Below are positions 1-64,000 of a DNA stretch of 64,000 nt, in pieces. The position numbers and the translations under genes were made by a program. Location of the stretch: positions 124,001-188,000 of the IMG/VR virus record IMGVR_UViG_3300045971_000577. One strand, written 5' to 3'. Under the pieces are notes generated by a model that saw nothing but the letters and a program-made list of their open reading frames with translations, searched no databases and was not told the DNA's origin. Within the stretch, counting starts at the first letter, position 1; each line of letters starts with the position of its first letter.

Positions 1-321
1 ACGGTGATTTAGAAAAAATCGTAAATCTCTCGATGGATCAAGATACACCACTGTGGTTTTCCAGTGCTGATTTATCAACAATGGATTATTACGAGATTCG
101 TAGATTAGTGTTTGTTCAATCTCGAATGCAGTCTTTGGGTTATTAAATTCGGCAAGGATCCTGTATGTGTAATCGGCGAAATTTTTACTAACTTCTTCCG
201 AGCTAGTAAAATAGTGTGTACCGAAATCTAAATTAGCAGGAAAGTAATTAGCTTCTCTATAACCTATATAGAATTTCTTCGTTACTTTGTGCTCACACCG
301 ATACACATAAGCTCTTGTCAT
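1..321 (-). CDS. GIY-YIG-like homing endonuclease, runs off the window edge
   Basis: Manual translation MTRAYVYRCEHKVTKKFYIGYRE...HYFTSSEEV...EIEQTLI...LLIN; same family as 37825..38433; open to position 1. Confidence 0.6.
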   Translation of the reverse strand, partial: MTRAYVYRCEHKVTKKFYIGYREANYFPANLDFGTHYFTSSEEVSKNFADYTYRILAEFNNPKTAFEIEQTLIYESRNNPLLINQHWKTTVVYLDPSRDLRFFLNHR

Positions 322-1517: not shown

Positions 1518-1738
1518 TAGTAAATATCTGCAGCGAATTTGGATGCACGCATCCATGATTCCCAATCTTCGATTGCTTCTTTCTTTGTGTCGCCGCGTCC
1601 AATAAGTCCGTAATCGCGCCAACCTAATCCATTTCTTGTAGCAATGTCGTCACGCGGAACTGCACAATGCCACTTCCCATCTACACGCCAAAATCGTAGA
1701 TTTTCTACGGTCCATTCGCTTTGTGGAATATATCTCAC
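1517..1738 (-). CDS. hypothetical protein
   Basis: ORF coupled to the clamp loader stop. Confidence 0.55.
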   Translation of the reverse strand: MRYIPQSEWTVENLRFWRVDGKWHCAVPRDDIATRNGLGWRDYGLIGRGDTKKEAIEDWESWMRASKFAADIY

Positions 1739-2673
1739 ATCAGTCCCTTTGCAACCATCTCTAGCTCTACAAGTGTTGCTGATAGATTTAGCTCAACGTC
1801 GCCAATCTGTCCGTGTTTTACGAGTCCGTCGCGAATGACAAGAATGCACTTGTTTTCTTTCTCTTCGTTGTCAGCCCACACAGCAAGATTTTCATACATG
1901 AAGCGATAAACGCCTTCGTAATCTTCTTGATTGAACTTTTCGCATACGTGAAGTCTACCTTCTCTATATTTTCCGCTTCGGAATAGCGCGACCATATCGA
2001 TCATTGCGTCTGACGTTTGCTCGCTGTCCGCATTAGGCGATACCAGCTTACTACCGCGTACATTCGCCTGAATCATGCTAATACCGCGCCTTAGATCCGG
2101 GTATGTCTTCTCTACTATTGCTTGCAATGCGTCTGGGTCAATCTCGACATTTTCAGTGTCGAGCACTTCTACCAGTCGTCCGTAGAACTCACCCATGTCG
2201 AGACTTTCAATGTGCATGCGCCCCGTTTCGCAACGTGATTTGATAGCATCTGTAATCTTATTTGGGTGATTGCAAGTTAGCAGGAATCGTACCGAGCTTG
2301 CATACTTTTCCATAGTGCCTCTAAGGACACCCTGGGCTGCTGGAGATAGTCCGTCTGCTTCGTCTAGGAAGACATACTTCATATCACCGTAACCCATTGT
2401 CTCAGAAAATCGAGTAATGGTTTCGCGGATGTAATCGACACCGTTATCTTTAGATGCATTAACTTCGAGAACGTCGAATGGATCGATGTTCAACTCGTTA
2501 AGAAGCAGCTTGATTAGTGTAGACTTACCAGTACCGGGAGACCCGGATAGAAGCATATGTGGTAATGCACCACCTGCTATCCATTGTTCGATCTGTTGTT
2601 TTTGTTTCGGGTCTTTGAATACATACCCGCTCGCCTTAGGTGGGCGATATTTTTCTGTCCATAGATCTTTCAC
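1735..2673 (-). CDS. clamp loader AAA+ subunit (T4 gp44 / RFC-like)
   Basis: LWTEKYRP RFC box, Walker A GSPGTGKS, Walker B LDEAD, SRC motif. Confidence 0.93.
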   Translation of the reverse strand: MKDLWTEKYRPPKASGYVFKDPKQKQQIEQWIAGGALPHMLLSGSPGTGKSTLIKLLLNELNIDPFDVLEVNASKDNGVDYIRETITRFSETMGYGDMKYVFLDEADGLSPAAQGVLRGTMEKYASSVRFLLTCNHPNKITDAIKSRCETGRMHIESLDMGEFYGRLVEVLDTENVEIDPDALQAIVEKTYPDLRRGISMIQANVRGSKLVSPNADSEQTSDAMIDMVALFRSGKYREGRLHVCEKFNQEDYEGVYRFMYENLAVWADNEEKENKCILVIRDGLVKHGQIGDVELNLSATLVELEMVAKGLM

Positions 2674-2720: not shown

Positions 2721-3077
2721 TCAATATTGCGGTGCTCGTTCGTTCGCTGCCGAAAATACTGAGAAAATAGCTGTCTCTGGATCTGTGTCGGAAACTAGCA
2801 TCACACTCTGCGGCCATTCTACGCCCCACAGTTGGGTGTCTGTTCCGTTGTCTTCCTTAACCTTGAGCATTCGAGTCCAACGGCCATTCTCGATAAGAAT
2901 CCACTGCCCGGGTACAATATCGGTAATGTCTTCTCCGACAGAATAAACCTTTCCCCAACGAGGGCGAATACCTTCGCTCTTGCCGTTATCATTAGGGATG
3001 ATAATGCCGTTAACAATGCGCGAACCTCTTTCGAGATCCGTAACCAAAACCTTACCCTTTAGTGCTTTGATACTCAC
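2721..3077 (-). CDS. groES: GroES-like co-chaperonin
   Basis: IKALKGKVLV...GIIIP...GKVYSVG...IVPGQWIL cpn10 pattern. Confidence 0.75.
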   Translation of the reverse strand: MSIKALKGKVLVTDLERGSRIVNGIIIPNDNGKSEGIRPRWGKVYSVGEDITDIVPGQWILIENGRWTRMLKVKEDNGTDTQLWGVEWPQSVMLVSDTDPETAIFSVFSAANERAPQY

Positions 3078-3418
3078 TTAACTTCCTTCACGATAATGTC
3101 ACCAGATGGCAACTCTGTTTCTACTTGTGTCGACTTCGGTACAGGAGGATTTGTCTTGATGACTTTCGGTGTAGGAGTCATATTCATTCCTACAGCACTA
3201 GGTACAGGTCCCTTCAAACCAGTCGCAACAACTGCTTGCTGAACGCGATGATTTTCACGAGCAATTTGTTCGGCAGTCTTTGCAATTTCGCCACCGTTGA
3301 CAAGTTGATCACCGCGAGCGTTTACCTTCATGTTTCCAATTGCAGGTGATTTTTCGTTTTCACGGCGAATAGAATCCATGTCTATTGTTACACCGCGATA
3401 TGTTACATGTTTAGCCAT
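3074..3418 (-). CDS. hypothetical protein
   Basis: ORF coupled to neighbours; GNMKVNARGD motif. Confidence 0.6.
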   Translation of the reverse strand: MAKHVTYRGVTIDMDSIRRENEKSPAIGNMKVNARGDQLVNGGEIAKTAEQIARENHRVQQAVVATGLKGPVPSAVGMNMTPTPKVIKTNPPVPKSTQVETELPSGDIIVKEVK

Positions 3419-3960
3419 TATGCTATTTCCTTTAGATAATCTTTAATGTCGAGTCCGTACTTAATGGAATCGACTTTGTGAACCCCGATAAGATATAGTA
3501 TATACGAGGATACACTTGATCCTCTACCTACACCCCATATAAATTTATTCTTTCTCATGTAATCGATCAAGAATATAAACACACGCAGAAGCATAATCAA
3601 CTCACGCTCTTCGTACATTTTGTATTCTTGATGCACGCGATCAATCTCTTGCTGTACCTTGCATTTATCGAGCAGCCACGCAAGCACGTCTATTTGCTGA
3701 TAGATTACTGGAAAAATCCATTGATCAGCACACTTTTCGTGAAACTCATCGAATGATAATATTTCTTCGGGCGCACCCTCGAAAGTTATTACTTCGGACA
3801 GGAGTTCTGATTGGTGTTCTTGATGTAGTCTTATCTCGTCGTCAAAAATTACATTCAAGTGGCTGATGTTTTTGCCTTGCAATAACAATTCTCGCAGGCT
3901 ATCACTATTTAGTATTGCCTGGCCGTATGTGTTTATTGTTAGATTTTCTTCGGCTTCCAT
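3418..3960 (-). CDS. DNA polymerase III alpha (DnaE)-like N-terminal palm fragment
   Basis: WGVGRGSSVSSYILYLIGVHKVDSIKYGL matches DnaE GPGRGSAAGSLVAY.LGIT.IDP...L; only 180 aa. Confidence 0.8.
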   Translation of the reverse strand: MEAEENLTINTYGQAILNSDSLRELLLQGKNISHLNVIFDDEIRLHQEHQSELLSEVITFEGAPEEILSFDEFHEKCADQWIFPVIYQQIDVLAWLLDKCKVQQEIDRVHQEYKMYEERELIMLLRVFIFLIDYMRKNKFIWGVGRGSSVSSYILYLIGVHKVDSIKYGLDIKDYLKEIA

Positions 3961-4670
3961 TTTTCAACTTGAACTATTCTTGCAGGCTCTCTTACCATTC
4001 CCACTGTTGTTTCGGTATTCATATCGTTGATAACTTTACGAAACTCGTCCATCGGATCTTGTATGTCGGGGAAGTCTTCCTTAACTTGTTCTTCACCTTC
4101 CTTCGCTTCGTCCGGAAATGGCTTCACAAATTCAAAACAGAACCCATCATCTCTGAACCACCAAGGACCAGTATCCTTTGTCATCCCCTCAGTATAATAT
4201 TCTGCAGAAATTGATGGCAATTCATATCCATCCTCGGGTTCATCGAACGTGTATTCCAAATTTGTATCGCTTCCACGCAATCTTATTTCACCAACTACTA
4301 GATTCGGTCCGGCAAGTGATGATATCTTAGCATGCAGAAGCTGAACTAATAAATCGTCATGTGGATTATCGGGACAGAACATCGCTATGTTAGACGAAAG
4401 ACATGCAAGATACAAGTCATCTTCGTTACCGACATCGACTACCAGGATGTTGGGTAGATTTGTATCTAACCAGAAGTAAATTTTCTGATATGCGATGGTT
4501 GCATTTATCTCTATGTCTTCCTTTGACTTACCTTTCTTTCCGCCAGCAACCAAGCTAACGTGCAAAGACCAATCGACCGGAGTCAATACTGTATTTTGAA
4601 TTCTGATCCCGGAGAAATCGTACTCCAGAGTCATGTGGCTCTTAATGATATGTTTTCCCTTCTTGATCAT
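3939..4670 (-). CDS. hypothetical protein
   Basis: 243-aa ORF directly upstream of the DnaE fragment. Confidence 0.65.
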   Translation of the reverse strand: MIKKGKHIIKSHMTLEYDFSGIRIQNTVLTPVDWSLHVSLVAGGKKGKSKEDIEINATIAYQKIYFWLDTNLPNILVVDVGNEDDLYLACLSSNIAMFCPDNPHDDLLVQLLHAKISSLAGPNLVVGEIRLRGSDTNLEYTFDEPEDGYELPSISAEYYTEGMTKDTGPWWFRDDGFCFEFVKPFPDEAKEGEEQVKEDFPDIQDPMDEFRKVINDMNTETTVGMVREPARIVQVEKWKPKKI

Positions 4671-57008: not shown

Positions 57009-58460
57009 TTATCGTTTCTTTACAAACGCTCGTAATGCCTGCGCACCTTCCAACGGATCAACCTTCGACGATGTTTCTCTCGGAGTTATCTTTGTGATTT
57101 CCCCGGAGGTGACATCCAATTTCTCGCCTGACCTAACAACACTCTTCTTCTTTAGTTGTTCATAGATATTCTTCGAAGTTGCTGTTACCGCATTGTCATC
57201 ATCTTCGTCGAGATCAGATATTCTTAAACTCTTGTTGTTGAATGCTAAATCTACTTTTGATCCTACACCAGAACTGGAACGTGTCTTGATAAATTGAATT
57301 TGATATCTTCCCCCTTCCTTCATTGCAGCACTTGTGAAAATACCAATCACATTATCTGCTGTGTTGACTTTAGAAATGCCGCCGGCGATGTGACTTGGAT
57401 CGTATTCAATTTCTTCATAAGATCCACGATTCAATTGTGAAGCTGAAACTGTTACTGTGTCGAGTTCAATCGCCAGATTACGTAATTCTTCTGTTACATA
57501 TTTGTCCTTCACGAACAAATTTTCCGCAGAAATCTTCTTGCTCATGGGCATCATCAAGTCCAAATAGTCAACAAGAATTGCATCAACCTTTAGTTTAGTT
57601 GCAATTTCGTATTCTTTAATGAACGCACGGATGTCGTTTGATGTACAACCGTTGGGTAATTGCTTTACACGAAACGAACCCTTGCTCTTTTGTTGCGATG
57701 CTCGTACCTTGATATGCACATCGTCGATGTTACGCATAACTTCACGAGTTTCATATCCAGTGTGCATTGCGTCAATACGCATGGAGCAAAGCTTTTCACT
57801 AAGTTCAAGTGAAAGATAAACTACGTTTAGTCCAGCCTGTGCCCAATTTACGGCAAGATTTTGGAGAAAAAGCGATTTCCCCGCTCCAGATTGTCCAGCA
57901 AAAATTGTAATCTCGCCCTTGTTGAGACCACCGTACAACTTTTCGTCGACCGTCTTCCACCCCGTCGAACATTGACCTTTACCCTCGCGGATCGCTTCAA
58001 GCCGCGCTTTAGGATTGGCATAGTAATCCGTGCCAAGGTCCTTGACAAGTGCGATCTGGACGGCTGCCTTGATTGACGCTTCAACTTCGCCATATCTTCC
58101 CTCATCGAGTAAATCGGGTGATGCAAGAATAGCATCACGCAATGCCTTATGTCTACAAAACTTTTCAAACTCGCGCAGAAACCAGTTCTCATGAACTGAT
58201 GCCTCTACTTCCATAATCTTTACTTCTTTGCGCGTCAGTGCTTTGATCTGATCTAATGACGGAATGTTAGAGAAGTCCGTGCTGTAGCTTTCAATGAAAG
58301 CAACCGTATCTTTGTTTTGCTTATCATCGAAGTAATCCGATCTAATAATTCCCTTGCAACGAACAAAAAGATCCGGATTACTCATCATAAAACTAATGAA
58401 TAAATCCTCAATATCTTTACTGTAGTCGTTGATTTCACTTGCGTTTTCTTGATCTGCCAT
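57009..58460 (-). CDS. replicative DnaB-like helicase (T4 gp41-like)
   Basis: STGW, Walker A GQSGAGKS, SLEL, VDYLDL, ASQLNR, KTR. Confidence 0.93.
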   Translation of the reverse strand: MADQENASEINDYSKDIEDLFISFMMSNPDLFVRCKGIIRSDYFDDKQNKDTVAFIESYSTDFSNIPSLDQIKALTRKEVKIMEVEASVHENWFLREFEKFCRHKALRDAILASPDLLDEGRYGEVEASIKAAVQIALVKDLGTDYYANPKARLEAIREGKGQCSTGWKTVDEKLYGGLNKGEITIFAGQSGAGKSLFLQNLAVNWAQAGLNVVYLSLELSEKLCSMRIDAMHTGYETREVMRNIDDVHIKVRASQQKSKGSFRVKQLPNGCTSNDIRAFIKEYEIATKLKVDAILVDYLDLMMPMSKKISAENLFVKDKYVTEELRNLAIELDTVTVSASQLNRGSYEEIEYDPSHIAGGISKVNTADNVIGIFTSAAMKEGGRYQIQFIKTRSSSGVGSKVDLAFNNKSLRISDLDEDDDNAVTATSKNIYEQLKKKSVVRSGEKLDVTSGEITKITPRETSSKVDPLEGAQALRAFVKKR

Positions 58461-59502
58461 TTTGCTGAATATTCCATGTTAGTCGGATCTTATCTTTTCC
58501 AGAAACCGCCGAAGAAATAATCGAATGTGTGGTTAGTAACCTACCGTATTTCTCTGCTGCCTTTGCTGCGTCTTTTATGTCCGGCGACCATTTCGGAAAA
58601 GACACAGCCCAATCATTTTCAATAGCAACTTCTACAAGATCCCAGCCTTTTTGATCTCTATCAGGACAGACTATAACCTGCTTCTGTAAACGGTTTATGA
58701 TGTCAACCTTTGATTGGCCTATTTCTCCAAGGTTGCTTACACCATCTACCGTCCAGGCATCCAATACACCCTCGTTTACAATACAGTATTTACGTGACCA
58801 ATCACCCTGAGGGTCTAAGTTATAGACAAAGTCTTCAGGGCACTGCTGATAATACTTGGGTGGGAATTTTTCTCCTGAGTCGTAATTCAATCTTGAAGTA
58901 AATCCAACGATTTTACCGCGGAAGTAATACGGAATTATCACACGCCTATTTAGATCGTGCTTAGTGGATGGTGTCCAATAGAACTCGTCCAGATTGTATA
59001 TTCGCCTATTGATAAGATATTCAACAGTCGTTAGAAACTCTGGATCATCTAGCCCGTATTCTAGCCATTGATTTATTGTCAACGAATCTTCAGGAAGATT
59101 CATAGGCTTCCACTTCTGGAACAATGACTTGAGTTTACTTTCTAATGTTTCGGGTGGCTTTTCGCCGTCGCCCTCTCTCACTTCGGCAATGTTATTTTTC
59201 TGTTTGAATATTTCAAATTCAATCTGTTCAATAAACTTATCGTCAACGTGGATTTGCTTCAAGAAGAACTTCAATGATTTAGAAAGTTCTTTGCCTTCAG
59301 TATATGCTGCGCTAAATCCGCAGTTGAAGCAGTTCATACAAATAGAGTTAGGATTAAACTGTATACCGAAGCGAAATCGTGTATCCGCACCGTGTCCCTG
59401 CGTATGACAGAGTGGGCAATTTCTCTTCTTCCACGATTTAGGTGCATCCCTTAATTGCCCTATGTTAGCTAATATGGCTTCTTTTAATATATCATTTATC
59501 AT
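58435..59502 (-). CDS. DNA primase (T4 gp61-like)
   Basis: CPLC...CFNC zinc finger, IIP, KY, TOPRIM EGVLDA, PDRD..G, KD. Confidence 0.88.
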   Translation of the reverse strand: MINDILKEAILANIGQLRDAPKSWKKRNCPLCHTQGHGADTRFRFGIQFNPNSICMNCFNCGFSAAYTEGKELSKSLKFFLKQIHVDDKFIEQIEFEIFKQKNNIAEVREGDGEKPPETLESKLKSLFQKWKPMNLPEDSLTINQWLEYGLDDPEFLTTVEYLINRRIYNLDEFYWTPSTKHDLNRRVIIPYYFRGKIVGFTSRLNYDSGEKFPPKYYQQCPEDFVYNLDPQGDWSRKYCIVNEGVLDAWTVDGVSNLGEIGQSKVDIINRLQKQVIVCPDRDQKGWDLVEVAIENDWAVSFPKWSPDIKDAAKAAEKYGRLLTTHSIISSAVSGKDKIRLTWNIQQNGRSRKRK

Positions 59503-60283
59503 GTATTTCTTCTAAATTCCATCCATGCTTAGATGGCTTCTTTTTTCGATGACAACCATATATTATGTTGTATGGCAAATTATTCTCTTTACAGAAATCA
59601 TTGATGCTTTTGATTATTTCTGTGCTACCGTCCGGAAAGGTAAGTCTCCAACTTTTTGCAGTGCCGGATGCTTCTTTGAATTTTCTAATTCTTTCCTGTG
59701 CTTCTTCGGCGGTCTCTTTTTCAAATCTATTTTTCTGCCCTATACTGTATCTTAATCTATCTTCCTCTGTAAGCACTTTTTCTTGCCACGCGGCTCTTAA
59801 CCCGTTACTAATCCTGATACCATACTCTTCAAGAGCCTTATCATCCTGATATATTGTATTCCAGAAGTCGTTAGATATTTCACTTCGACGAATTTTTCTA
59901 TCGGGATTCAGTATATAATTCTTTTTTCTTGTTTCGGATGATTTCTGTATTATTTCTTTTAGATGATCACTATCTAAATTTCGGTATGTATTGCCACCGG
60001 TTCCGCCTTCGGTAATATTATATCCATTAGGTTTTATTGTGTTAAATGTAGCAATAAATTCTATTTCAAGATTATCAAGATCTGTAGAATTATCCGTCTC
60101 GGCAAGTATAGTAAGTTCAAAGTTATCTATACCATATTTTCTTAATGCTCGATGAAAATATGATGTTATATTTTCTTTTTTGGATTCTTTAATGTGCTCC
60201 GATAATCTAATATCAATAGTGCGCTCAGTCTTACCTATGTAAGATTTTTGATTTAGTTTATTTGTTGCTTTATAAATTAACAT
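59492..60283 (-). CDS. GIY-YIG homing endonuclease
   Basis: LIYKATN...SYIGKT...R..EH...E...I...GYN.TEGG. Confidence 0.88.
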   Translation of the reverse strand: MLIYKATNKLNQKSYIGKTERTIDIRLSEHIKESKKENITSYFHRALRKYGIDNFELTILAETDNSTDLDNLEIEFIATFNTIKPNGYNITEGGTGGNTYRNLDSDHLKEIIQKSSETRKKNYILNPDRKIRRSEISNDFWNTIYQDDKALEEYGIRISNGLRAAWQEKVLTEEDRLRYSIGQKNRFEKETAEEAQERIRKFKEASGTAKSWRLTFPDGSTEIIKSINDFCKENNLPYNIIYGCHRKKKPSKHGWNLEEIHDK

Positions 60284-61323: not shown

Positions 61324-62193
61324 TTATGTCCTTACAATAAGTTTCTCTAGAACTCCAGGGTTCAACACTTCAGTTGATGGGAAATATCTAAACTTCAACC
61401 ACATGAAGTTGGCAGAGAATGTCCATGCTTGTGTACCAGTATAACCGATATACTCGATACTGGTGGACATCGTTGTAGGGAATATCTCGAACCACCGATT
61501 ATGATTGAGATATGGATCTGGCGTTTCTTCTAATGAACCCCATATTTCTAAGATGCCAGTGAAGTCCTTAGTATATGTCGAAAAGGAATGCACTGAATCG
61601 ACATGATTTTGGACTCGTGACCCGGGAATTCTAGACGAGTAGAAACACGGTCTTGGGGCACCCATAAGTGGAGCCATAATGTCTGGTGTCCAATCTCCGG
61701 GCAATAGTGTTACGCTAGGAATAGGTGACTTGAACGCTTGTTCAGTAATTTCCAATTCCATAGATACATTATTATCCATATCCGAAAACATAGGCATCTC
61801 TACATAATAATCAGGAACATTAACTACAAATTCCTTTGTTCTGATAAGAACCATATTGTAGATACCAGCAGCAATACGGGCAATATCACCACTATCTAGT
61901 TCTAATGTGATAATACCTTTGGCCGGGCCTAGCTTGCATAGCTTTTCAAGTACAACAGTCTTATTGTCGGGATCGATAACCCGTGCATAAACTTGTTGGT
62001 TACACGCAACATCGTACGGAACTCGATCGGGCTGTAAGGCTCTAAAGAAGATTTTATTGTCCACACCTTTATGACATTTTATTGGGTTTTTGGACATGGG
62101 TCCCGTATCCTTACAAGGACAAAAAGAATCACCAACGACTGTCAACTGTCTGACATGGTCGTACATATATACCTTATTTAGGTTTATATCCAT
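61324..62193 (-). CDS. conserved hypothetical protein, possible structural protein
   Basis: HKGVDNKIFF; beta-rich 289 aa. Confidence 0.55.
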   Translation of the reverse strand: MDINLNKVYMYDHVRQLTVVGDSFCPCKDTGPMSKNPIKCHKGVDNKIFFRALQPDRVPYDVACNQQVYARVIDPDNKTVVLEKLCKLGPAKGIITLELDSGDIARIAAGIYNMVLIRTKEFVVNVPDYYVEMPMFSDMDNNVSMELEITEQAFKSPIPSVTLLPGDWTPDIMAPLMGAPRPCFYSSRIPGSRVQNHVDSVHSFSTYTKDFTGILEIWGSLEETPDPYLNHNRWFEIFPTTMSTSIEYIGYTGTQAWTFSANFMWLKFRYFPSTEVLNPGVLEKLIVRT

Positions 62194-62873
62194 TATTTGG
62201 CTACCTTTTTGCAGTTATCAAAATGCCATCTTTGCATGGCGCCTTTTCCACCCGATTTATCACAATACGGGCATGTATTTATTATCTTCTTGCTACCCAA
62301 TAAATGAGATGGCCGGCCCTTTAGCGAATTTGAGCTTCCTTTCTTGGGGCCTGGTTTTCCCTTCTCCTTTATCGGTTTTTCTTTCTTCATTCCTTTGTTC
62401 CACGCGTCTTTACCGAACATGGGATTTTTATCTCCCTGTTTTGACTTGGAAATATTATCTCTATGAGTTTCACTTTTAGATATACCCTTACCAAAACCAG
62501 CAAGCGTGTTGGATATCTTCTCTCTTGTTTCTGCAGTAACCACATAATTATCATTAGATCTACGGGTGACAGCCTGTTTCTTTCTTGACTCTGCCGATAC
62601 TATACGTCCGGCACTTCCTTCGCCACCATCAGTCATATTTCGAAGGATGCCAGTGCCATTATCTTTCCGACCGTACCAGCGGATCATTCTGCGTTCAATA
62701 GCAAACGCACCGAGTTCGGTAAGCTTTGTTTCAAGAAAGATTATTCTATTACGATCTTGCGGTACAGCTATACTATGATTTTTAGAGAATGCTCGGCTAT
62801 CCTTCCCCTTACCTATGTGATAGGGTGAGAAATCCGCACGAAGATAAGCATAAACATAAAATTCTGTGTTCAT
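62193..62873 (-). CDS. GIY-YIG-like homing endonuclease with NUMOD3 repeats
   Basis: FYVYAYLR...PYHIGKG..RA...E...I..YGRK....L.N.TDGGEG; [16 protein letters not shown]; CPYC. Confidence 0.85.
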
Positions 62874-62919
62874 AATCTATTATTTATCACCCGCAGCGTG
62901 TGTATCGATAAATATCATT

Positions 62920-63291
62920 ATGATAAAATTAGACGAAATTCAATCAAAGTTCCCCTTCCTTAGCGGGTTAAAGTGCCTTACTCACGAGTATATTGGCATC
63001 ATTCAGAACTCTGACGATAAAATTATAAGTTTCTACGATTATGAATCGATTAGGACGCCAGAAGAAAAGAAGCTCTTCTTAGAGTATGGCGAAATTTGGT
63101 GGTGGGAGAGTAATAGACTTCTGCCTATCAACATCTTTATGCAGGGCCAAATGGTCCCGTTTAGGTATTGTCTCAAGACAATGGTCAATAAAGATGTAGA
63201 GATTATGTTTGGTTCGGTAACAAGCCTAAACAACATAATGAAGAAGCGTATTAAGAAACGACAGATTCAGCTAGTAAGACGGCAGGACTAG
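62920..63291 (+). CDS. conserved hypothetical protein
   Basis: KFPFLS...EYIGIIQN...WWWESNR.LPINIF; late promoter at 62907. Confidence 0.65.
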   Translation: MIKLDEIQSKFPFLSGLKCLTHEYIGIIQNSDDKIISFYDYESIRTPEEKKLFLEYGEIWWWESNRLLPINIFMQGQMVPFRYCLKTMVNKDVEIMFGSVTSLNNIMKKRIKKRQIQLVRRQD

Positions 63292-63460
63292 ATTCTTCAA
63301 ATTCAATACTGGCGTATTCAAATTGTGCGCCCATAAGACGAAAGATAACCAAGTCTGATTCGTCTACAGTTACATTTTCGCAGCCATTTGAATGATAGAG
63401 TTTGCGAACTCTATCAAAATCACATATTATGAAATTCTCTTTCACACATTTATAAGTCAT
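63251..63460 (-). CDS. hypothetical protein
   Basis: Coupled to the DnaE fragment. Confidence 0.45.
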   Translation of the reverse strand: MTYKCVKENFIICDFDRVRKLYHSNGCENVTVDESDLVIFRLMGAQFEYASIEFEESSPAVLLAESVVS

Positions 63461-63999
63461 TCTTGTGACATTTTCTCAACAAGTAGATTTAGGTGGACAA
63501 TAATGGCCAGAGAGTAGGATATAGAATGGCTTCTTTTGAAAAAGTAAGCATCATCGCCCTCGACCTTTACCCACACATCTTTGCGAATTCTATCCCAGTC
63601 ATGCCGCTGTAGGTATGCTTTTGCTGGGCGCATAATCGCCAAAATCATAGCTAAATCCTCGACCGACTTAGGCTTGTATCGCTGTAGTAGGTCGCTATGC
63701 CCTTTGAGGTGGAATAACTGGTCAGTTATCTCTTCGTATTCAAAGAAATCCCAAGGTGGTTCTTTATTTAGAAGGTCAAGTAGATGCTGCTCGCTCCTAA
63801 CACCTTCATACATGTTTACATTCAAGAAGTCAATCTTAAAATATCCATAATCCTTGGCAATACGGTGATCAATCGTAGAAATGTTTGTTACAGGATCGCG
63901 TGGAATATTCTGAAAATAGATAGCCGTATTATGCTTATCATATTTGTTATCAGCACGGTCAATGCGGCCAACAACATGCTCCAATCCTTGCAAGATTTT
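63457..63999 (-). CDS. DnaE (Pol III alpha)-like second fragment, 5' end beyond the window
   Basis: KHNTAIY, GYFKIDFLN (third catalytic Asp), LAIMRPA, YFFKRSHSISY (DnaE FNKSHA.AY). Confidence 0.8.
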   Translation of the reverse strand, partial: KILQGLEHVVGRIDRADNKYDKHNTAIYFQNIPRDPVTNISTIDHRIAKDYGYFKIDFLNVNMYEGVRSEQHLLDLLNKEPPWDFFEYEEITDQLFHLKGHSDLLQRYKPKSVEDLAMILAIMRPAKAYLQRHDWDRIRKDVWVKVEGDDAYFFKRSHSISYSLAIIVHLNLLVEKMSQE

Positions 64000-64000
64000 A

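Follow-up and report, generated by a model that had tools for sequence, protein, structure and literature searches.

A divergent split mini-Pol III alpha in an uncultivated T4-like jumbo phage and a rare natural single-chain form of the family

Introduction

The closest described relatives of the gene pair discussed here come from a survey of jumbo phages by Iyer et al. (2021, Viruses 13:63; PMC7824862), who reported that the phages of group 2.2 carry a phage-specific minimal form of the DNA polymerase III alpha subunit (Pol III alpha) beside a family-B polymerase. This minimal enzyme consists of two distantly encoded proteins, an N-terminal half that binds the NTP and a C-terminal half that binds Mg2+ and the template, and the authors suggested cooperation in the synthesis of one strand or in repair (PMC7824862). 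Examples of the family include GAP32 gp323, PA5oct EST35_0220 and both halves in Phosso; the annotation as DNA polymerase is already in place for both halves in PHROGs 11127 and 11778 and in several GenBank records. In PA5oct, EST35_0220 is the B half, and the A half is at 187567-188022 of MK797984. The literature that we searched contained no biochemical or genetic test of the split mini-Pol III. The PA5oct omics paper says nothing about either half at the level of the gene, and a 2026 jumbo-phage review does not mention them.

Another phage polymerase is also made from two separately encoded proteins. The chimallivirus PhiKZ has a split B-family polymerase with two parts, DNAP-N and DNAP-C, for which a stable 1:1 complex was demonstrated (PMC13648687, bioRxiv 2026). 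It is a precedent for this kind of assembly, but the PhiKZ enzyme belongs to family B and not to family C, it is the main replicase, it has a clamp-derived partner and it has been tested at the bench (PMC13648687), whereas the mini-Pol III is known computationally.

In this report we describe a split mini-Pol III from a phage that belongs to an uncultivated lineage abundant in metagenomes. The stretch of DNA that was analysed, hereafter the window, is 64,000 nucleotides long (bases 124001-188000) and comes from a 369,145-bp virus record that has direct terminal repeats and was judged to be complete. The pair is a divergent new copy of the published family from the T4-like group 2.2 jumbo phages. 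As in those phages, the enzyme is divided between two proteins encoded by distant genes on the same strand, the flanking genes are of the same kind, and there is a companion family-B polymerase, a T4-like replisome and no other Pol III domain. The phage differs from the isolated members only in sequence: its nearest isolates, the PA5oct-type phages, share no more than 42% (A) and 51.5% (B) identity with it. A nucleotide search with the A region against isolated phages gave no match.

The two halves

The features are listed in Table 1. An earlier note on this DNA, made from the letters of the window, had pointed to two ORFs about 60 kb apart as a split DnaE-like polymerase. Both ORFs exist, as single copies on the minus strand, at a distance of 59,496 bp from each other; B is upstream of A on the coding strand, with dozens of genes in between. 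No tRNA or tmRNA genes were found in the whole window (1-64000), and scans for promoters and terminators stayed at the chance level.

Table 1. Coordinates of the two halves, of the fused form and of the genes around them. Positions are those of the window unless they are marked as genome positions or prefixed with the name of a locus (L).
Feature	Position	Strand	Remarks
Half A	3418..3960	(-)	180 aa; phage-specific N-terminal domain of ~80 aa, followed by the first palm segment of Pol III alpha
Half B	63457..64000 (visible part); full gene at genome 187457-188050 = L004:1458-2051	(-)	197 aa; starts 50 nt past the window end
Fused gene (P0326, P0391, P0392)	L253:1066-2193; L254:519-1649; L255:1827-2957; L256:1292-2422		375-376 aa; four independent metagenome contigs from four samples
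Clamp-loader large subunit, gp44/RFC-like AAA+	1735..2673	(-)	phrog_168 (E 1.9e-70); Pfam AAA and Gp44_lid
GroES/gp31-like co-chaperonin	2721..3077	(-)	Pfam Cpn10; phrog_931; at 78/82 A loci
114-aa protein, function not assigned	3074..3418	(-)	phrog_14844; at 75/82 A loci, the most constant downstream neighbour
243-aa ORF	3939..4670	(-)	upstream of A; overlaps the A start by 22 nt
DnaB-like helicase	57009-58460	(-)	comes after the primase; phrog_19 (E 5.1e-71)
DNA primase, Toprim type	58435..59502	(-)	weak Toprim_2 match; phrog_47 (E 4.5e-20)
141-aa protein	62866..63291	(+)	phrog_11637; at 157/162 B loci, the most constant B neighbour; also adjoins the fused variant
232-aa C2H2 zinc-finger protein	L004:2931-3629	(-)	phrog_11058; flanks B in 151/162 loci
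Homing-endonuclease-like gene	1-321	(-)	free-standing
Homing-endonuclease-like gene	59492-60283	(-)	free-standing
Homing-endonuclease-like gene	62193-62873	(-)	free-standing
Homing-endonuclease-like gene	L004:7377-7961	(-)	free-standing
Homing-endonuclease-like gene	L004:4733-5563	(+)	free-standing

Half A contains the GRGS segment with which the palm of Pol III alpha binds the nucleotide. The protein is matched by the Pfam profile PF07733 (DNA_pol3_alpha) at positions 19-95 out of 260 (E 1.7e-8; 34.9 bits, with a cut-off of 23.9) and by phrog_11127 over its full length (A 1-177 on 1-171 of 171, E 6.6e-48). In the fold model of A (pLDDT 88.5), residues 82-180 match E. coli DnaE 279-397 at Z 10.4-11.5, with an rmsd of 2.1-2.6 A over 94-98 residues, and M. 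tuberculosis DnaE1 307-416 at Z 12.8. Residues 1-81 have no DnaE counterpart in the fold comparison and are poorly conserved; an Atlas feature search with residues 1-82 returned nothing above 0.84, which is within noise. The Pfam match agrees with the first description of this ORF, which had noted a GRGSS palm segment and no PHP domain in its 180 residues. A PHP domain was found neither in A by Pfam nor anywhere in the entire 369,145-bp genome.

Half B matches phrog_11778 over its full length (B 3-193 on 3-194 of 197, E 2.9e-62), and its match to the Pfam finger domain is weak and below the Pfam thresholds. Its motifs are a DVDLD (DxDxD) at residues 8-12, a KIDFL and the finger helix KRSHSxxY. 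The first of these is in the 17 codons outside the window, and so, the DxD motif that the earlier note proposed to look for beyond position 64000 is present. In the fold model of B (pLDDT 94.2), residues 1-197 match Taq DnaE 456-841 at Z 10.4, with an rmsd of 3.5 over 195 residues, PolC 966-1299 at Z 10.1 and E. coli DnaE 395-784 at Z 8-8.8.

The end of B corresponds to residue ~784 of E. coli DnaE, and nothing follows; the HhH_6 domain is absent from the genome. This fits what had been read from the visible part of B, an ORF with KIDFL and FKxSH motifs that stops without a clamp-binding or OB region. B also lacks the thumb and the finger segment ~645-740 (E. coli numbering), i.e., ~100 finger residues are gone. 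No conserved clamp-binding tail was seen, and the C-terminus of B and the N-terminus of A are variable.

Mapping onto E. coli DnaE and the position of the break

The residues of both halves were numbered against E. coli dnaE from profile alignments, a multiple alignment and the fold models. Profiles and fold models were required, as single-sequence searches of the PDB gave marginal matches (E 0.13-0.66). In the fold search, Z values of 10-13 were obtained for DnaE and PolC only and the next matches drop to Z 3-4; judged from these models, the relationship of A and B to DnaE/PolC is far beyond chance.

The residues R146-G147-S148 of A correspond to E. coli R362-G363-S364, and L176 to L392. In B, D8, D10 and D12 correspond to D401, D403 and D405, K72 and D74 to K553 and D555, and S174, H175 and Y179 to S759, H760 and Y764. 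The active-site residues of the E. coli enzyme are D401, D403 and D555, and H760 is its proposed steric gate against ribonucleotides (PMC8485763). The pair therefore has in common with the bacterial enzymes (2HNH, 3E0D, 5LEW, 3F2B) a Pol-beta-like palm with D401/D403/D555, the GRGS loop and the S759/H760 finger helix. The differences are equally plain: DnaE/PolC has 1,160 aa in one chain, whereas A and B together have about 377 in two; A and B are without the PHP domain, thumb, mid-fingers, clamp-binding motif, HhH, OB and tau-binding end, and A has an extra N-terminal domain of ~80 aa.

The two halves are colinear with DnaE across the break, the E. coli equivalents of the end of A and the start of B being about residue 396 and about residues 394-397, respectively. 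The break is in the short L392-D401 loop, so that A stops four residues past the equivalent of L392 and B starts seven before the equivalent of D401.

This geometry bears on the idea that a split intein links the A and B proteins post-translationally, or that they are joined through recoding. Such joining has a bacterial parallel: the cyanobacterial dnaE is broken into two distant genes, DnaE-n and DnaE-c, whose products are joined by a trans-splicing split intein. Unlike that pair, A and B have no intein residues; they are minimal proteins, and the break between them is at a different point, ahead of the DxD strand. Together they just fill the DnaE loop in which the break falls and leave no residue over, which excludes intein halves; the constant ORF lengths (A 165-216 aa, B at most 204 aa) are also too short for them, and B is located upstream of A, 59.5 kb and dozens of genes away. 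Thus, the absence of split-intein motifs from the visible ends, which the earlier note had recorded, extends to an absence of room for intein halves at either end. The sequence leads us to reject split-intein joining, and we give joining of either kind practically no credence.

Conservation and distribution

In isolated phage genomes, tblastn found A in 93 and B in 96, with equal tallies by genus; the carriers of both include PA5oct-like phages, GAP32/BF, RaK2, Atu_ph07, Phosso and XacN1. About 95 isolated jumbo phages thus have the two halves together. The statement in the earlier note that related jumbo myophages have similar split genes was correct, and the family is published (PMC7824862). 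In a metagenome protein collection clustered at 90% identity, there are 1,832 clusters for A and 681 for B. About 240 loci were retrieved from IMG/VR (82 A loci and 162 B loci were counted for neighbours). In none of these are A and B closer together than 3 kb. Of the IMG/VR genomes with a completeness of at least 90%, the four with A all have B as well, on the same strand.

Conservation was assessed from alignments of 50 A and 57 B sequences with identities of 31-80%. R146, G147 and S148 are invariant in A, and D8, D10, D12, K72, D74, F171, K172 and H175 are invariant in B. The ORFs are intact in more than 240 loci, in which the length of A ranges from 165 to 216 aa and that of B does not exceed 204 aa.

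These results address the possibility that A and B are not catalytic, either because they are decayed remnants or because they are structural parts of the replisome that keep only the fold. One might think so since each piece alone is an incomplete domain and B falls below the Pfam thresholds. However, the catalytic residues are all invariant down to 31-38% identity, the ORFs are intact and of constant length in more than 240 loci and hundreds of clusters, and both fold models are confident. The earlier note had named missing catalytic aspartates, or decay without conserved relatives, as findings that would speak against a working enzyme; the aspartates are present and invariant, and conserved, intact relatives are plentiful. 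We reject the pseudogene reading on the invariant catalytic residues and the intact ORFs, and a non-catalytic role of any sort seems very improbable to us. The two proteins should be named halves of one split mini-Pol III alpha, not fragments or pseudogenes.

Three individual sequences deserve mention. In a distant relative (L124:2587-3510), the A frame is open for ~310 aa upstream, which may be an N-terminal extension, or the start codon may be further in. One 117,666-bp IMG/VR contig (L109/L110) has two opposed copies of A and is flagged for inverted terminal repeats; this is probably a palindromic assembly artefact. Finally, two proteins that are 76-77% identical to A (P0066 and P0068) are labelled at NCBI as coming from an Ignavibacteriaceae metagenome bin, which is either a hint at the host or a mis-binned phage contig.

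A natural single-chain form

When the B profile was searched against 1.84 billion representatives, one 375-aa protein appeared among 150 otherwise short matches. Its first 182 residues align to all of A (hhalign probability 99.7, E 4.6e-27). Two further fused proteins exist, which are 78-81% identical. On the contigs with the fused gene, the A and B profiles both match one ORF, and the NCBIfam DnaE models run continuously across the A-B junction of the protein. This large search overturned the claim that A and B are always split. A natural fusion of this type is a classic sign of two proteins that function as a unit.

The history of the fused form is more difficult to read. The gene is located in a B-type neighbourhood, and its closest relatives (P0393-P0401) are B-only, with no A domain in their flanks. 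A FastTree phylogeny with E. coli as the outgroup places the fused clade 13 nodes deep among the split forms, and IQ-TREE places it inside a well-supported 12-member set with nine split proteins. However, an AU test did not reject a tree in which the fused form and the outgroup are on one side (p 0.77), the outgroup branch being very long. From these sequences, the fused chain may be the ancestral form or it may be a re-fusion.

A different composite protein is P0358 (233 aa), in which a B-type N-terminal half is followed by an unrelated C-terminal part; it is either an assembly chimera or a real fusion. Its C-terminal motif resembles that of an RluA-type pseudouridine synthase, which is our own assumption.

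A predicted complex of A and B

Modelling both fragments together, as the earlier note had suggested, gave an ipSAE of 0.86 (0.86, 0.86 and 0.85 in the individual runs), whereas the best of three controls reached 0.00. The ipSAE mark was calibrated on known cases: 58 of 80 solved complexes attained it, as did 2 of 110 mismatched pairs. With our own alignments, this calibration applies approximately. The runs share at least 90% of their contacts, and the pLDDT of the partners is at least 86.

The modelled contacts include those of the GRGS loop (A 138-151) with the DxDxD strand (B 6-15) and of the region of A around W81 with B 46-48. This placement of the GRGS loop on the DxDxD strand would make the active site a composite of both proteins. 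The residues of A at the predicted interface are more conserved than the rest (0.67 vs 0.53, p 3e-4); for B the values are 0.70 at the interface and 0.65 elsewhere (p 0.056). The model supports binding of A to B, and its score may in part reflect a memory of the DnaE structures, in which these surfaces meet inside a single chain.

Gene neighbourhoods

Genes A and B overlap the start or stop codons of their neighbours and hence are parts of tightly packed gene strings; for example, the start of the 114-aa gene overlaps the stop of A (TAATG). From this arrangement, both genes are predicted to be translationally coupled to their neighbours. The clamp-loader gene is downstream in the same string as A; it occurs within the 3-kb flank of 60 of the 82 A loci, and GAP32 and MIJ3 have it likewise. 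The gene order around A and B matches in GAP32, MIJ3 and PA5oct, and the PA5oct primase has the same position relative to B as in this phage. A UvsW-like helicase is also encoded near B. Upstream of B are a RecA/UvsX-sized ORF and an ORF with an acidic tail, which may be homologues of UvsX and gp32, respectively.

Some of the neighbours might contribute to the enzyme. The earlier note had suggested complex models with and without the 243-aa ORF. It was detected upstream of A in only 26 of the 82 loci; synteny thus lends no support to it as an obligate third subunit, and it has no Pfam or PHROG match. The 232-aa and 141-aa neighbours of B are candidates for extra subunits or DNA-binding partners.

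The replication module also has several free-standing homing-endonuclease-like genes (Table 1), which were typed as GIY-YIG or HNH by motif; two of them are confirmed by PHROG matches. A and B are uninterrupted. The 226-aa member of this set also adjoins B in 22 related loci.

Proposed role

The phage encodes an intact family-B polymerase of 908 aa with exonuclease and polymerase domains, and no family-A polymerase (PolA) was found in the genome. Since a complete family-B polymerase, a primase, a helicase and a clamp loader are present, the split enzyme would be an extra polymerase. We consider it likely that A and B are complementary halves of one minimal C-family core, which would associate as a non-covalent heterodimer with a shared active site and serve as an accessory polymerase that does not proofread. 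The earlier note had arrived at a stripped, two-subunit C-family nucleotidyltransferase that is probably not the replicase, and the invariant catalytic residues, the complex model, the strict co-occurrence of the halves and the 908-aa PolB all favour that view.

We envisage the following scheme. A and B would be made as separate proteins and would bind each other non-covalently, with no intein involved. A would give the GRGS loop that holds the triphosphate of the incoming nucleotide; B would give the three metal-binding aspartates, the lysine beside the third of these and the finger helix with the steric-gate histidine. Presumably neither half is active alone. Together they would act beside the main replicase as a short-patch, DNA-dependent DNA polymerase without proofreading, and primer extension, gap filling and repair or recombination synthesis are possible jobs. 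The retention of the dNTP-reading helix and the steric-gate histidine suggests DNA rather than RNA synthesis, and the loss of proofreading, thumb and clamp contacts suggests that the synthesis would be short and distributive. In addition, since the finger segment ~645-740 and the thumb are absent, the contacts to the primer-template and the triphosphate may be incomplete without another protein.

Accessory C-family polymerases are known in bacteria. B. subtilis DnaE, which functions beside PolC, and DnaE2/ImuC have no proofreading of their own and are full-length single chains. A possible likeness of A and B to these enzymes would be one of role, by analogy; A and B are split and short. With the NCBIfam model of the error-prone DnaE2/ImuC (NF004225), A scores 14.8 bits and the fused form 38.2 bits, below the cut-off of 939, and no imuA/imuB-like gene context was seen around A or B.

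Another suggestion is that the active site of A and B is used for something other than templated DNA synthesis, such as untemplated terminal addition, synthesis of RNA or primers, production of a nucleotide signal or of an intermediate in DNA modification. The Pol-beta-like nucleotidyltransferase fold is common to many non-replicative enzymes. The missing thumb, the ~100 missing finger residues and the absence of a clamp-binding, HhH or OB module would all agree with such a use, as would the presence of a full replicase and a primase in the same phage. However, the part of the fingers that is retained is the helix that reads the incoming dNTP, and its steric-gate histidine is invariant (PMC8485763). 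Moreover, the fold matches above Z 4 are to C-family polymerases only, and both genes sit among replication genes. Primer synthesis, which the earlier note had offered as a possible role, is not supported, for two reasons: the phage encodes its own Toprim-type primase and DnaB-like helicase, and the histidine that selects dNTPs in E. coli DnaE (PMC8485763) is invariant. On balance, we think that a use outside templated DNA synthesis is unlikely.

It could also be proposed that the role of main replicase, or of dedicated polymerase for one strand, falls to the split enzyme and the lesser part to the family-B enzyme. Iyer et al. did suggest synthesis of one strand (PMC7824862), the split enzyme is universally retained in this group of phages and gene A is linked to the clamp loader. 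Yet the split enzyme lacks proofreading and a thumb, and neither clamp nor tau contacts can be recognised in it, whereas PolB has exonuclease and polymerase domains as in T4 gp43. We find this division of labour quite doubtful, even more so than a use outside templated synthesis.

The accessory polymerase that we prefer could be more independent than we propose. The 377 residues of A and B, or the 375-aa chain, might be self-sufficient and would then be the smallest known C-family polymerase; it might hand extended primase products to the family-B replicase, in the manner of Pol alpha or B. subtilis DnaE, and the fused form might be an ancestral relic. We mention this as a speculation with a rather small chance of being correct.

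Conclusions

The new elements in this analysis are the rare fused variant, a residue-level map, a controlled complex model and the synteny statistics. The split mini-Pol III is the most reduced natural core of a bacterial replicase, and it is found in phages that have a family-B polymerase of the archaeal/eukaryotic type. Should the two halves or the fused form prove active, they would define the minimal catalytic unit of C-family polymerases and would provide a tractable model for the origin of the class. The split mini-Pol III may also reveal a role for a second polymerase in T4-like replisomes.
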